A stretch of 60,284 nt of DNA from Guillardia theta CCMP2712 (lineage: Eukaryota > Protista > Cryptophyta): NCBI RefSeq assembly GCF_000315625.1, contig NW_005434644.1:642434-702717 (forward strand), in the 5' to 3' direction. The notes under the pieces were generated by a model, which was not told the origin of the DNA, ran no database searches, and saw only the letters and a list, made by a program, of their open reading frames with translations. The position numbers and the translations under genes were made by a program. Shown one piece after another: positions 19,299 to 25,668 of this stretch (the stretch's first letter is position 1; each line of letters opens with the position of its first letter).

Positions 19299-22200
19299 AT
19301 GGCGAGTCTGTACGCTCGGATAATGTCGTTAGGTGATGGGAGTGAAGGCACTGGACCGGCCGTCTGCTTGTCAGTTTTGAGGAGGGCGCAGTACAGCAAC
19401 GACGAGAAGCCGCTCATGCAGGTGCTCGTCAACTGCGGCGAGTGTGCATGCCGCATCCTGAACGAGACGCGGACCAAGTTGAGTAGAGTGAGCCACGTCC
19501 TTGTCACCCGCTGCGAGCCCACGAGGATCTCAGGCATCTCGAGCTTGCTGTTCCACCTCAGTGATAAGGGTAGTGCGAGCCTTTCTTTCGTTGGTCCAAC
19601 CCCCCTCCACTCCTACATCGAGACCGTGAGAACTTTCGTCAGGCGGCGTTTCCCAGAGATTGAAGTCGCCGAAGTCGGAGCAGAAGGAGACAAAGGTTTT
19701 GCCTTCAACAGCTCATCTGATGATCCAGATACCTTTGCCTGGGCACAGAGCCGAGCCCCACACACTGGAGTTTCAATCCACGCGATCCCGATGACAGCAA
19801 CGTCGAACAAACGCCAGAAAACCTTGCATGGAGACTGCATCGAAAACAGTTCTTCAAGGTCAAGACCAGTGTTATCATATGCGTTCCTCATTCGGGGCCC
19901 TCCACCTCAACCGCACAAAGATTCTGATGCGAATGCAACCAGGCAGACTTTGTTTGTTGTTGTGGATCATGCAGATGAGCAGGTTGATGCGAGCCAAGTG
20001 TGTCAGGCGATCACGTCTTGGCTAGAGCAGATGGAGATGAAATCAAAAGACGGAAAGTTGAGAGACGATCTGCATCAGAGAGTCATGTTGCACTTGGGTA
20101 CCAGGAGCGTCTTGGAAAGTGCAGAATTCCGGAGTCTGAGAGAACGTGATGTGTTCCAGTTATTCCAACACGTTGAGTTGTGTACAAATGAGGCAAGCTC
20201 TGGGCCTTGTGCTGTGGAGAAAGAGGAAATCGAGATGATCCTTGACACAGGTCGCTCACATGAAATATGATCTTTCTTCTCTTCTCTGCTGTTTGTCTGA
20301 CAGGTTTTCCTTTCCAGACGTCAAGAACAGCACTTTTTCCACTTTCTTTCCCTCCTACTGTCGGCAAAACCTCATGCTGCACAGAGCAGAGCCTTGGTTA
20401 TTTCCTTTCTCGCATGCTTCTAAGCACAAAAATCCATCAGAAGACGACTCAGCCAGTCTGTCTCCTTTGGCAGTTATGCAAATATTCCCCAAATGTGTCA
20501 GTGAGCACAGCCAAGGTGCGCTGGTTCGCTCAGAAGAGTGTGAGCTCGCAGAAATGTCCAGGGGGAGAGTCGTCGACCTCAGTGAAGGTGATGTGAAGTG
20601 TCTGATGTCAAGGTTGTTGTCTGACGCGGGGGAAAGAGGGTGGCAGGAACAAGCCAAGCTCGTCCTCTAACAAGCTTGCGGCCTTGAACATGAAGAGAGA
20701 GCTCCGAGGGCTCCCTCCCCTCCCCTCCCTTCCTCCCTCAGAGGGAGCAGTGCAAACCAAGAGCTCTGAGCAGGAGGAAGCACAGCCCGCTGGTTACCTG
20801 GAGGAGATTGATCACCTGGTACGACAACTTCCCTCTGCCCTTGCTCTCTCTCTCAACCTCGGATCACCTTCAACCTCGGCCTCCCAGGCACAATCTGCTG
20901 CTCATCTGCAGCTCACGTACTTTACGAAACTAGGTGTTCCTCGGCACCGGTGCAGCTGCTCCCAGCAGGCTACGATCCTGCTCGGGAATTCTCCTCTCCA
21001 TCCCTGGAACCTCCGTGGGATCTCGGGAGGTAAATGGAAAGACACGAATCTTGCTGGACTGCGGGGAGGGATGTCTTTCCCGCCTCATGCAGATTGCCAG
21101 CAACGTGGGAAAACGAAATGTACGAGGGAAGTTCGGGGAGGGGAAGGGGGAGGAGGGGAGGAAGGAGACGGAAGAGGGGAAGGGGGAATGGAAAGAGAAG
21201 GGTAAGAGGAAGGTAGAGGGGAAGCTGGACGAGATCCGCTCGTGCCCAACTTGGAGGTGGCACGATTTCCTGATGGAGATCAAGATGGTTTGGATTTCTC
21301 ACATGCATGCAGACCACCACAGGTGTCACGATGTGCCACCCCTCTTGCTTCCCGCTGACGATGGCGTTGTTAGCGGCCTGCTGTCTCTTCTCTACCATCG
21401 CCTCCTCGCACAGGAATGTCCAGCTTGCAGGTCTGAAACTTTTCGGTGTGATGAAGAGGCTGAAGCAGGCGGTAGGAGGGAGACAAAACAGTTGAGGATG
21501 GAAGATCAGGGGCAGGGGCAGGAGCAGGAGGATGTTTTGATTGTCGGACCGCATGCTCTCAAGCAAGTAGTTGAAAGCTATCACCATGTCATCAGGGGGA
21601 ATTCAAGTAACTGCTGCCTCCTCTCCTCCTCCTCCCTTCTTCCTCTCCTCCCCCTTTTCCCTTGCCCCCCCCCCCTCTCCCTCCTCCTCCTCGACCACCT
21701 CTCACAAACTCTTGTACTCAGATGTCTCTGCTTCTCTTGCCTGCAAGCATTTCACTGACTGCAATCGGCACGTCCTCTTTCCTTCCTTCCACCTCAGAAG
21801 CCTCCCTGTCTTCCACAGCCACGACGCGCATGCAGCTATCCTCCGATTCCAGTCGCGCTCTAATGGCAAGGAGGAAGTGATCATTACGTACTCGGGGGAC
21901 ACACGGCCAAGCATGCAGCTGGTGGAGGAGACGATGAGGATGGTGGAGGAGCACCAGGAGGAGGAGAGGAGGAAGACTGCAGGAGGAGAGGGCGGGGGAG
22001 CGGCGAGAGCTTGTGTGCTCTTAATCCATGAGGCCACGTTCGACTCGGATCAACTCGAGCATGCAAAGAGGAAGCGACACAGCACAGTAGGGGAGGTGAG
22101 CAGTGAAATCTCCTCCTTGGGGAGTGCAGGGGGGAAGAGGAGGTGGAAGTGACAGTCCGCAGGCCATCCAGGTTGGCGAGCAACTTCGAGAGCGGCTGAG

Positions 22201-22657
22201 GAGGAGGATGGGGATGAGGTACAGCGCCCGACCCTGTGCTGCATGCTCACGTCGTCCTCAGCCGCCTCTGCTACGGCACCATCCTCTCGCACTTCAGTCA
22301 GCGCTACCCCAACATCTTCTCCCTCGATCTCACTGCCGGTCCCTCCCCCCCCTGTGCGAGGTGTTGCTGACAGTGCTCTGCAGGGTCTGCACCCTCGACC
22401 ACAACAATCGCAGCCGCTGCCACTACCACCACTGCTGCCACTTCCTCCTCGTCCTCCCCTCCTCTAGCTGTCCCTGTCATGCTTGCCTCCGACGGACTCT
22501 TCCTGCCTCTGGAGTTCGAGAGGATGCGGCAGGAAAGAGTGCGTCTGCTCCGGCTCTCGTTCTTACTCATCGGCAGGTGTTCGATCGCTCCGCCCTCCTA
22601 CTTGACAGACTGGCCAAAGTGAAGGAGGCGATGAAAGACAGCAAGGGAGAAGGATGA
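19299..22657 (+). CDS. TRZ1: tRNase Z, long form (ELAC2/Trz1-like)
   Basis: N-terminal pseudo-motifs (LVNCGECACR; HVLVTR...ISG). The C-terminal catalytic half has FLGTGAAAPSRLR, LLDCGEG, ISHMHADHH, YSGDTRP, LIHEATF, HST and HFSQRYP. Confidence 0.93.
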
Positions 22658-22738
22658 GGCAGCAGACGGCGGAGGACGGGAGAGGAGGAGCGTTCAATGT
22701 TATCGAAGCAGATCGCATCTCAATTTTCTTGATCACGC

Positions 22739-24722
22739 TCACACGGACTGCCCCGTCGCCTCCCTGTCCTCAAAAACCCGTCGAGCCCTGATCCTCCTCG
22801 CGAAATATTTCTTCTCTGCCTGTATCAGCCTCTTGTGGCTCCTTGCCCTCCTCTCCTCCTTGCTGAAGACCGAGTTTTCAAAGTCCATCTCTCTTAACAC
22901 TGCCCGCAGGTCCAACTGACCATCTTCCTCTCTTCCCTCCTCTTCCTCCCTCCTTTCCCCTCCTTTCCCCCTTCCACCTTCCTGGCTCCGTCCTTCCTCC
23001 TTCTCCTTCCCTGTTTCAGCTGCTTCTGTCTCCTGCTCGCCCTCTGACAGCATCCTCTTGACCGCCTGCCGGCGTGACTTGTCCTGCTCCGCCTTCCATC
23101 CCTCCCCGCTCCCGGCCCTTGACCATGCACATCAGCAACGACAGGGCAAGGCATGTGAATTCCTTACGTCGCGTTTCCTCCCTTGACGAGGGTCGGAGGC
23201 GTCTCGTGGTGCCTCGTGGGTTTGTCGGTGGTTGACTCTGATTTCTCGTTGACGGGGCTGCGAAAAATAGTAAGAGGAGAGAAGCGAAACTTGAGGGGAG
23301 GGGAGCAGAGGATGGCAGACGAGGTATCACCTGCGGTTGCCTTCCTCCTCCTTCTCCTCCTCCTTCTCCTCCTTCCTCTTTTCATCCTCCTCCTCCTCCT
23401 GTGGCTGGTTATGATCATCCTACATCCAATCACAATGTCAGCCTGCAAGCAGCGACTGCGAAACGAATGTCCCCACATCGTCAAACTCCTGAGTCGAGGG
23501 CAACTCCTTGGCGCTCTGAACGGCCCAACCTTGGTTCGCAGGGACCTCATGCGCGGCATCCGGCTGGTCCGTGGACGACTGCATGCTGTCCTCGTTCACA
23601 TCGCACAGTTCAATCTCGTACGCCTTGCTCGTTAAGTTGCCCGTCAAGCCCTGCCAGCATCTTCAGCGACTCCTTGTCAACTCGCCTCCTTTTGCACCTC
23701 TCTGCCCTCCTCGTGCAGGAGACCGTCTGCCTGCACGTGGAAGAAGAAAGGCTGGCTCTCCCCGTGCTCGCTCGCCTCGGAGACGCACTCGTCCTCGGTG
23801 TCCAGGTCCACCGCTCGCTCCTTCACGTGCCAGCCGTTGGAGTGGATGGAGTCAAGCTTCTCCTGCTGAATGTCGGGGATCCTCGCTTGATCGCCATCCC
23901 GACGGAAGATCCCGAGGAGGGATTGGACCTGTCAAGCTTGTCATCACTCGAGCTCAACCTTCTATCTCCTCCTCACATCCGGGTCTGCGTTGAGGTCCAC
24001 AGGCTGCCCGAACGCGAAGCTCTCCCCTCCGATCCACTCGAAGTTGTCCACTGAGAGCACAAACTCGCTGCACTCTTGGTTCAGGTCGAAGCCTGCTCCT
24101 CGACATGTCACATCATCTCTCCTCGACCGCCGTAGCATGCTCATCACCAGCTTGTAGAATAGAAACCAGAGCCCCCGACAGGCGCTGCCCTGGGAAGGCC
24201 TCGTTGAACTGCTCGAGAGCTTTGCTGCTGATGTGGCAGCTGATGGTGTTGTATCCATCAGAAACCAGGCAAGACATCATCTGCCTGTCAATGTCCAGCA
24301 GCTGAGCCTGAAATGTTTCAGCGTCAAAACTTGCCGGGGCATCAGGGGAAGCTTGCAGCACATGGGTCACATCCACAAGTGCATGGGATGGGGGCGGGAT
24401 CGCTGCTGGAGACGAGCAAGAGGAGCAGGAGGAGCAGGAGGAGCAAGAGGAGCAAGAGGAGCAGGAGGATAAAAATGAGAGAGAAATCAGCACCATCACA
24501 TAGCAACTCGGCTATGCGAGCAGAGGATCTCAGGGAGGCTCAGCGGTGGAGAGGGAGGAATGGAAATTTTGAGCAGAGTCTCGCAGACGCGTGAGGGACA
24601 GGAGATCATGGCAGGGGGGAGGAAGGAGAAACGACCTGCTGAAGGGAGGACGGTGGGAGGCTCTGAGCAGGGAAGCGAAGCAGCGCCGGCTTCAGCCATG
24701 GCCTTCGTAGAACTTTGCTCAT
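22739..24722 (-). CDS. TPP1/ACD-Tpz1-Est3-like telomeric OB-fold protein with acidic disordered C-terminal region
   Basis: Spliced MSKVLRRPWLKPALL ... AQLLDI..CLVSDGYNTISCHISSKALEQF..GALVSI ... SEFVLSVDNFEWI ... LNADPDVQSLL follows the order of the TPP1 OB motifs as I recall them: LVLRPWIRELIL, GQLLEV, LLVSDGTHSVRCLVTREAL, AEFYLQVDRF, CNQDLDVQKKL. Confidence 0.75.
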
Positions 24723-25668
24723 GCGCGCCTTTCCTTTTCCGGCAGGTATCCGCGAGTATCCGTGAGAAATCCCATGAATATCCGCGAGTATCCGTAAGAC
24801 TGTCCAGGGGTCAGCCAGCAATAAAAGTTTTTTTCTCATCAATATGTTATGTTGTAAAAGTGTTTTAAACACGTGTTTCTCCGTACAATGGTGAATCATC
24901 TACATCTTAAATATTTTTATAATATATTTTTCTCCGATCTTTATGGATCTTTCCAATAGAGATACGTTTCCCCGAAGGGAGCAGCGAGGAGGGGTCACGG
25001 TCGCATTGGAGCATGGGTAGAGGGGGTACTCGCTGTTTCACATACTACAAAATACCCCCCTTTTTGAGTGGTAGTTCTGGGGTACAGATACTGGTGACGA
25101 AGACGGGGGTGGGGTGTGGAGGCAAAACGGGGTGGGGTGTTCTTTTTGATTGGCGAAATTCTCAGGGGGCCGAAAGCACAACGAAGTAGCGCGAAAGTTA
25201 TGCTGAAAACCAGCAAGAATGCGAGATAACTATATGTGAAGATGTTATCATTCAAGCTGTAATGATGATTTAAGCTTGTTCTTTGGCTGAGGCTCTAAAT
25301 TTTCTCACTTAGAGGCTCAAATATCTCTCTCTTGTAGTATTCTTTCGAGTAGATAATGGAGATTTCCATTCAGACCAGGTTACAAAGTCACAGCAAGAAT
25401 CATGTTGGATGGTTGAAATTATTTTTCTCTAGCGCAAAAGAAGTCTAGCGACGTTTGAGTCATGATTTTCGTGATGACGCACAGAAAAGGAAACAAACAT
25501 TAGCAAACTGCGGTCAGGAGATTCAGAGAATAGTTGTATTTTCTGAGACATGGGCGTCGTCCTGCAATCATTATCTAACCATTCTGCAGGTATTCATGCG
25601 CCACTGTGAGTGAGTTCATCAATAGAAACATCGTTCATTGCATAGAGACATTTATCGGATTTGCAAAC

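Follow-up and report, generated by a model that had tools for sequence, protein, structure and literature searches.

In the cryptophyte alga Guillardia theta CCMP2712, we describe a gene that probably encodes a member of the TPP1/TEBP-beta/Est3 family. The gene occupies the minus strand at positions 22739-24722 of a 60,284-nucleotide (nt) stretch of contig NW_005434644.1, hereafter the window. TPP1-type proteins physically link chromosome ends to telomerase. Their characterisation is, to our knowledge, confined to animals, fungi and ciliates. The data confirm that the gene is real, spliced and expressed. Family membership draws on several comparisons. Each is sub-threshold or marginal, but they agree in direction and we consider membership likely. 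The family itself was already known. What is new is a TPP1-like gene, missed by gene models, in a lineage with no earlier report.

Structure and transcription of the gene

The gene has eight exons. Its coding sequence of 1326 nt is in frame, without internal stop, and specifies 441 residues. An earlier note, made from the genomic sequence, had quoted five peptides and proposed that splicing joins them in frame and in a set order. All five lie on the minus strand within 22739-24722, where their genomic reading frames differ. We used transcript contigs from public runs, mapped to 22300-25100; of these runs, X2 and X3 are separate studies. In the spliced contigs, and in the 441-residue frame, the five motifs are joined in mRNA in the order proposed. 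A stretch that the earlier note had left for checking against RNA, 24340-24640, proved to be intron 1. Introns are GT..AG on the minus strand (CT..AC ends on the plus strand) and short introns of 44-57 nt occur in both the gene and its neighbour, as suits a cryptophyte rather than a green alga or a plant relative in the strict sense. The exons, and introns with transcript support, are as follows.

Exon 1, 24636-24722, minus strand: residues 1-29; ATG at 24722-24720; N-terminal motif MSKVLRRPWLKPALL; joint 24636|24307 seen
Intron 1, 24308-24635, minus strand: 328 nt, GT..AG; joint in X2 and X3; (GAG/CAG)n microsatellite at ~24400-24470
Exon 2, 24148-24307, minus strand: residues 30-83; beta1-beta3, helix and start of beta4; QLLDI and LVSDGYNTISCHISSKAL; joints seen
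Intron 2, 24093-24147, minus strand: 55 nt; joint in contigs of X2 and X3
Exon 3, 23977-24092, minus strand: residues 83-121; beta4-beta5 hairpin; SEFVLSVDNFEWIGG and NADPD; joints 24148|24092 and 23977|23928 seen
Intron 3, 23929-23976, minus strand: 48 nt; joint in contigs of X2 and X3
Exon 4, 23698-23928, minus strand: residues 122-198; post-OB peptide VQSLLGIF..RIPDIQQEKLDSIHSNGWH at 23809-23928, then acidic; joints seen
Intron 4, 23651-23697, minus strand: 47 nt; joint in contigs of X2 and X3
Exon 5, 23477-23650, minus strand: residues 199-256; acidic, probably disordered; acceptor joint seen, donor 23477|23476 probable
Exon 6, 23331-23419, minus strand: residues 257-286; Glu/Lys-rich low complexity; acceptor probable, donor from loose contig ends at 23262
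Intron 6, 23258-23330, minus strand: fits loose ends of X2 and X3 contigs at 23262 that continue with sequence from 23331
Exon 7, 23168-23257, minus strand: residues 286-316; joint 23168|23117 in X1-X3
Intron 7, 23118-23167, minus strand: 50 nt; joint in X1, X2 and X3
Exon 8, 22739-23117, minus strand: residues 316-441 and stop at 22739-22741; charged, helical; basic last helix at ~22754-22909

The exon 5 donor (23477|23476) is the sole junction unseen in RNA. We infer its position because contigs of X2 and X3 end at 23476, the site reads GAT|GTGGGG and the reading frame agrees; joining it to the acceptor 23420|23419 preserves frame. An alternative donor at 23465 (GTTTCG) also preserves frame and was rejected as a poorer fit to the contig ends. 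Placement of intron 6 allows for five letters common to both sides of the junction. Exon 3 starts at 24092 and the exon 2/3 junction reads LQA-G-FDLNQECSEF. At the 5' end, contigs begin at 24733 and 24728, so that 6-11 nt precede the ATG; relatives maintain the protein start M-S/C-x-x-L-K/R.

Other features of the locus were also apparent. A 17-nt exact direct repeat, TATCCGCGAGTATCCGT on the plus strand, is found at 24747-24763 and 24779-24795, 32 nt apart. It lies just upstream of the contig starts (24728-24733) and may be a promoter element. GAG/CAG-type tracts at 24400-24470 (intron 1) and 23334-23427 (coding, exon 6) have very deep low-complexity transcript matches and contigs are broken there. 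The extreme depth at 24368-24461 consists of low-complexity words. Downstream, a transcript contig (X1, X2) extends past the last exon into a neighbouring gene that lies convergently on the plus strand (22300-22700). Since a single contig spans both genes, their 3' ends overlap or abut. The convergent neighbour has a short GT..AG intron at ~22338-22382 and, at ~22527-22570, another gap (44 nt). A Pfam scan of the neighbour open reading frame at 21571-22149 found no match.

A cryptophyte protein family and its match to TPP1

The N-terminal ~130 residues belong to a family, found here in cryptophytes only (Hanusia phi and marine metagenome contigs). A phmmer search with exon 2 against 1.84 billion representatives returned five homologous fragments and one apparently spurious long protein. 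Two word-index searches extended the family to ~20 pieces, from marine metagenomes, Logan assemblies and NCBI. All are gene calls at the level of open reading frames that run into introns, and the representative and word-index searches found no full-length spliced protein of any cryptophyte. Nearest to exon 2 is a EukProt fragment from Hanusia phi (P0001, 91% identity). Environmental relatives share ~44% identity with the window protein.

The conserved blocks comprise the N-terminal MSEALKGxKWLKxTLL, QAQLLEV and C(I/V)VSDGYHR; ALDxFREEFPGQxL(T/S)GTMVxIQKAxFE and (D/E)FVLAVKxFxWIGGRP; and (E/D)PxxLDxxPEV, then LLxILLNDDGDDDRIPxSQQ. The motifs are not chance matches: other cryptophytes yield the same family, of which they form the conserved blocks. 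At the extreme N-terminus, four cryptophytes have M-S-x-x-L-(K/R)-x-x-x-W-L-K-x-x-L-L. Residues M1, L5, W9, L10, K11, L14, L15 and P18 are invariant in the four sequences, and the motif lies where TPP1 has its 'NOB' segment. It may correspond to the LRPWI motif of TPP1, as the earlier note suggested. By tblastn, the spliced window protein is collinear over residues 9-161 with four contigs (L001-L004) from Tara Oceans and other ENA metagenomes. The environmental cryptophyte relative on these contigs has an extra intron in the helix region (ATL|..AQEAL) and none in the beta4-beta5 hairpin. It has an intron after WIGGRP; in the window gene, the corresponding one follows DPD. Intron sliding or turnover in the family appears rapid. 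A collinear protein with differing intron positions is as expected of a conserved coding gene.

Comparisons with Pfam, the PDB and AlphaFold models used exon pieces and orthologues. With exon 2 alone, the top Pfam match was TPP1 (PF10341; E 0.039, 14.2 bits), and TEBP_beta was matched at E 0.17. An orthologue translated with a retained intron (P0004) matched TPP1 at E 1.9e-5 (25.0 bits) and TEBP_beta at E 0.0046; its database entry independently carries the PF10341 tag. Across 20 family pieces, TEBP_beta was matched in nine, TPP1 in six and every other family once. TPP1 or TEBP_beta was the top Pfam match for most family members.

We also searched the PDB with a profile of 132 positions (A7), which bridges both halves of the fold via a relative without the middle intron. 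At E < 0.3, only human and mouse TPP1 and Oxytricha TEBP-beta were recovered (best E 0.0065; TEBP-beta E 0.18). The alignment to human TPP1 is collinear: VSDG comes first, then ALD, the acidic loop and, last, EFYLQVDRF. The window protein aligns to the family profile without gaps over residues 28-146. A 60-column profile (A2) had designed armadillo repeats as its top PDB match. We judged these an artefact because their scores added up numerous very small repeat hits (i-Evalue > 100 for each), and they were gone with the longer A7. A phmmer search of the PDB with exon 2 gave no match. In the ESM Atlas, the three clusters nearest to the features of a cryptophyte orthologue were TEBP_beta, EST3 and TPP1 (0.93-0.94). 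Row 19 of that list, below the lead level, was a streptophyte DUF936 (PF06075) cluster at 0.81, noted since plants have no recognised TPP1.

Structural comparison gave a similar picture. The AlphaFold model of orthologue P0007 (residues 1-222) has the OB order of beta1-3, helix and beta4-5. Strands are predicted at 57-63, 68-72 and 77-82, a helix at 84-93 and further strands at 103-113 and 147-156, with a core pLDDT (predicted local distance difference test) of ~85. When this model was compared with the PDB by Foldseek, ranks 1-9 were human TPP1-OB, which came first, and TEBP-beta (E 1.2e-4 to 1.6e-3). Rfa1-N, Est3 and one Tetrahymena telomerase chain followed. An Atlas shape search placed TPP1/Est3 in row 1 and TEBP_beta in row 2.

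Human TPP1 carries a TEL patch, with residues E168, E169, E171 and F172 of its acidic loop named in PMC10055720. We numbered human TPP1 as chain index + 89, by our own count from the alignment, and this reproduces the loop named there. The corresponding segment of the window protein is as follows.

TEL-patch-aligned segment, 24185-24214, minus strand: EQFNEAFPGQ, residues 61-70; from the A7 hidden Markov model (HMM) alignment to PDB 5i2x and 2i46

After the helix, human W167-E168-E169-(K170)-E171-F172 aligns with F-R-E-E-F in the family and F-N-E-A-F in the window protein (residues 63-67). Equivalents of F172 and E169 are kept in FNEAF, and those of E168 and E171 are not; relatives with REEF keep two Glu. 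SEFVLSVDNF aligns with human A200-E201-F202...F209 (EFYLQVDRF), outside the TEL patch.

These results bear on the identification first proposed for the gene, that of a TPP1/Tpz1/Est3-like protein. It is supported, with TPP1/TEBP-beta the nearest family by profile and by Foldseek; these two, rather than another OB family, lead both lists. The suggested correspondence of the SDG and EFxLxVDxF motifs to the TPP1 OB fold agrees with the A7 HMM alignment. One detail requires correction. The EFxLxVDxF strand had been said to carry a TEL-patch Glu. The strand equivalence stands but the Glu assignment is wrong, because the HMM alignment puts the acidic loop on FNEAF (NEAF, residues 64-67) and the strand outside the patch.

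After the OB fold, residues 122-161, including RIPxxQQ, are conserved in Tara Oceans relatives. Residues 131-380 are strongly net acidic and residues 381-441 are basic, with an isoelectric point of 10.4. AlphaFold, run on exon 8 as a single sequence, places helices at 5-34, 70-83 and 86-121 of the exon, the last with pLDDT > 90; charged helices in this tail are weakly predicted. Net charge, isoelectric point and this model match the acidic region and basic helical C-terminus described at the outset. A Pfam scan of exons 4, 5 and 8 found no domain and no further OB.

Several points weigh against the assignment. Besides the choice of exon pieces and orthologues as queries, no family piece reached the Pfam gathering cut-off of 26.5 bits (best 25.0), and the E-values of A7 against the PDB are marginal. 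Mean pLDDT of the P0007 model is 53.9, which is low because the sole foldable orthologue carries two translated introns; its residues 1-50 have pLDDT 28-38. With a purely geometric aligner, RPA70N ties with TPP1. Only one of the three TEL-patch Glu positions is acidic in the window protein, and a profile of the N-terminal motif had no match in the PDB.

Proposed role and alternative explanations

We consider it probable, by analogy with characterised relatives, that the protein is a G. theta TPP1/TEBP-beta/Est3 member that would dock on telomerase and hold a POT1-type partner. The predicted architecture is an OB fold (residues ~1-125), a conserved post-OB peptide (~122-161), a long, probably disordered acidic linker and a tail that is basic and helical. 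The N-terminal segment and acidic loop correspond in position to the NOB and TEL-patch surfaces of human TPP1. Through these two elements, the OB domain would most likely dock on algal telomerase at its TEN/IFD-TRAP surface. For the site that would hold a POT1-type single-strand binder at the telomeric overhang, the strongest candidate is the post-OB peptide. The protein may thereby recruit telomerase and raise its processivity, like POT1-TPP1 and TEBP-alpha/beta. Telomere localisation, TERT binding and POT1 binding are all properties that we infer from these counterparts.

A different role within the same family is the main alternative. The protein could be a constitutive subunit of the holoenzyme that stabilises TEN, in the manner of yeast Est3 or Tetrahymena p50, with no POT1 partner and no part in end protection. 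The Est3 cluster was second in the ESM features, and Est3 structures were among the Foldseek matches. However, Est3 is essentially an OB alone, whereas in the algal protein, of 441 residues, the OB is followed by a conserved segment and a long tail. We regard this role as unlikely. Slightly less likely still is an OB domain of the RPA70N type, which would bind acidic or basic peptides in DNA-damage signalling or replication and have no relation to telomerase, its likeness to TPP1 being convergent or due to chance. The geometric tie noted above would fit such a domain. Conversely, none of the 20 family pieces matched Rep-A_N (PF04057), even at E values as high as 1, and no RPA chain was found in the A7 search of the PDB. 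Identity in structural alignments is 10-15% to human RPA70N and 16-20% to yeast Rfa1-N, compared with 27-29% to TPP1. Furthermore, the protein is without the DNA-binding OB domains (DBD-A/B/C) that come after RPA70N.

It might also be argued that the gene is non-functional, the locus being fragmented, non-coding or in decay and the motifs a coincidence. One contig of X1 keeps introns 2, 3 and 5, and so partly spliced RNA is also present. Raw RNA reads of X15 gave low-complexity matches only, with no genuine coverage, in the gene region. Against this stand spliced contigs in separate studies, GT..AG introns and an open frame of 441 residues. The protein is also conserved among cryptophytes though intron positions vary by species. 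We consider a non-functional locus highly improbable.

A transcribed, conserved TPP1-like gene in cryptophytes adds a fourth major lineage to those with such proteins. The surprise is limited because animals and ciliates span most of the eukaryote tree and an ancient origin was already expected. A literature search found no paper mentioning TPP1 together with Guillardia. Work on plant telomeres reports that no TPP1 homologue has been identified in Arabidopsis (PMC8450087), and TPP1 is left blank in a table of PMC11577926. Whether a POT1-TPP1 bridge to telomerase still works in cryptophytes is a more tentative matter, to which we give a little less than even weight. If it does, the POT1-TPP1 module would already have existed in the ancestor that Cryptista share with their neighbours, including Archaeplastida. 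The absence of TPP1 reported for Arabidopsis would then reflect loss, or divergence beyond recognition. The unusually short OB should be useful for structural and interaction work, and profile searches of algae and plants gain a new seed in this family. With its RIPxxQQ segment, the cryptophyte family could be a stepping-stone profile toward the missing plant or green-algal counterpart.

Comparison with known systems

Human TPP1 (ACD) is the closest known protein. Its OB (PDB 2I46, 5I2X and 7QXA chain O; PF10341) ranks top by Foldseek, PDB profile and shape. The two share a collinear set of blocks (QLLEV, VSDG, ALD, acidic loop + F, EFxLxVDxF and D(L/P)DVQ), and in both an N-terminal OB precedes a long tail, largely disordered in TPP1 and probably so in the alga. 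The algal OB differs in being shorter, without the long beta1-beta2 insert, and its beta4-beta5 hairpin has 5 residues rather than ~10. One or two of the three TEL-patch Glu are kept in the cryptophyte family. No POT1- or TIN2-binding motif is recognisable in the algal sequence. The algal tail, acidic except for a basic helical end, differs from the Ser-rich human one.

The same fold family includes yeast Est3 (PDB 2M9V, 6Q44 and 9SWN chain C) and fission-yeast Tpz1. Est3 is an OB-only protein of ~180 residues, with a lower identity of 9-14%; Tpz1 was recovered by none of the searches made. RPA70N (PF04057) gave no sequence-profile signal, and differs in domain context as well as in the low identity (10-15%) of the human domain.

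TEBP-beta of Sterkiella (Oxytricha) nova (PDB 1OTC and 1JB7; PF07404) was the commonest Pfam match (9 of 20 pieces) and ranked fifth by Foldseek, with ~21% identity. It contacts DNA and TEBP-alpha by an extended post-OB peptide, of which no equivalent was recognised in the algal protein. TEBP-beta has a basic C-terminal tail, as does the protein of G. theta.
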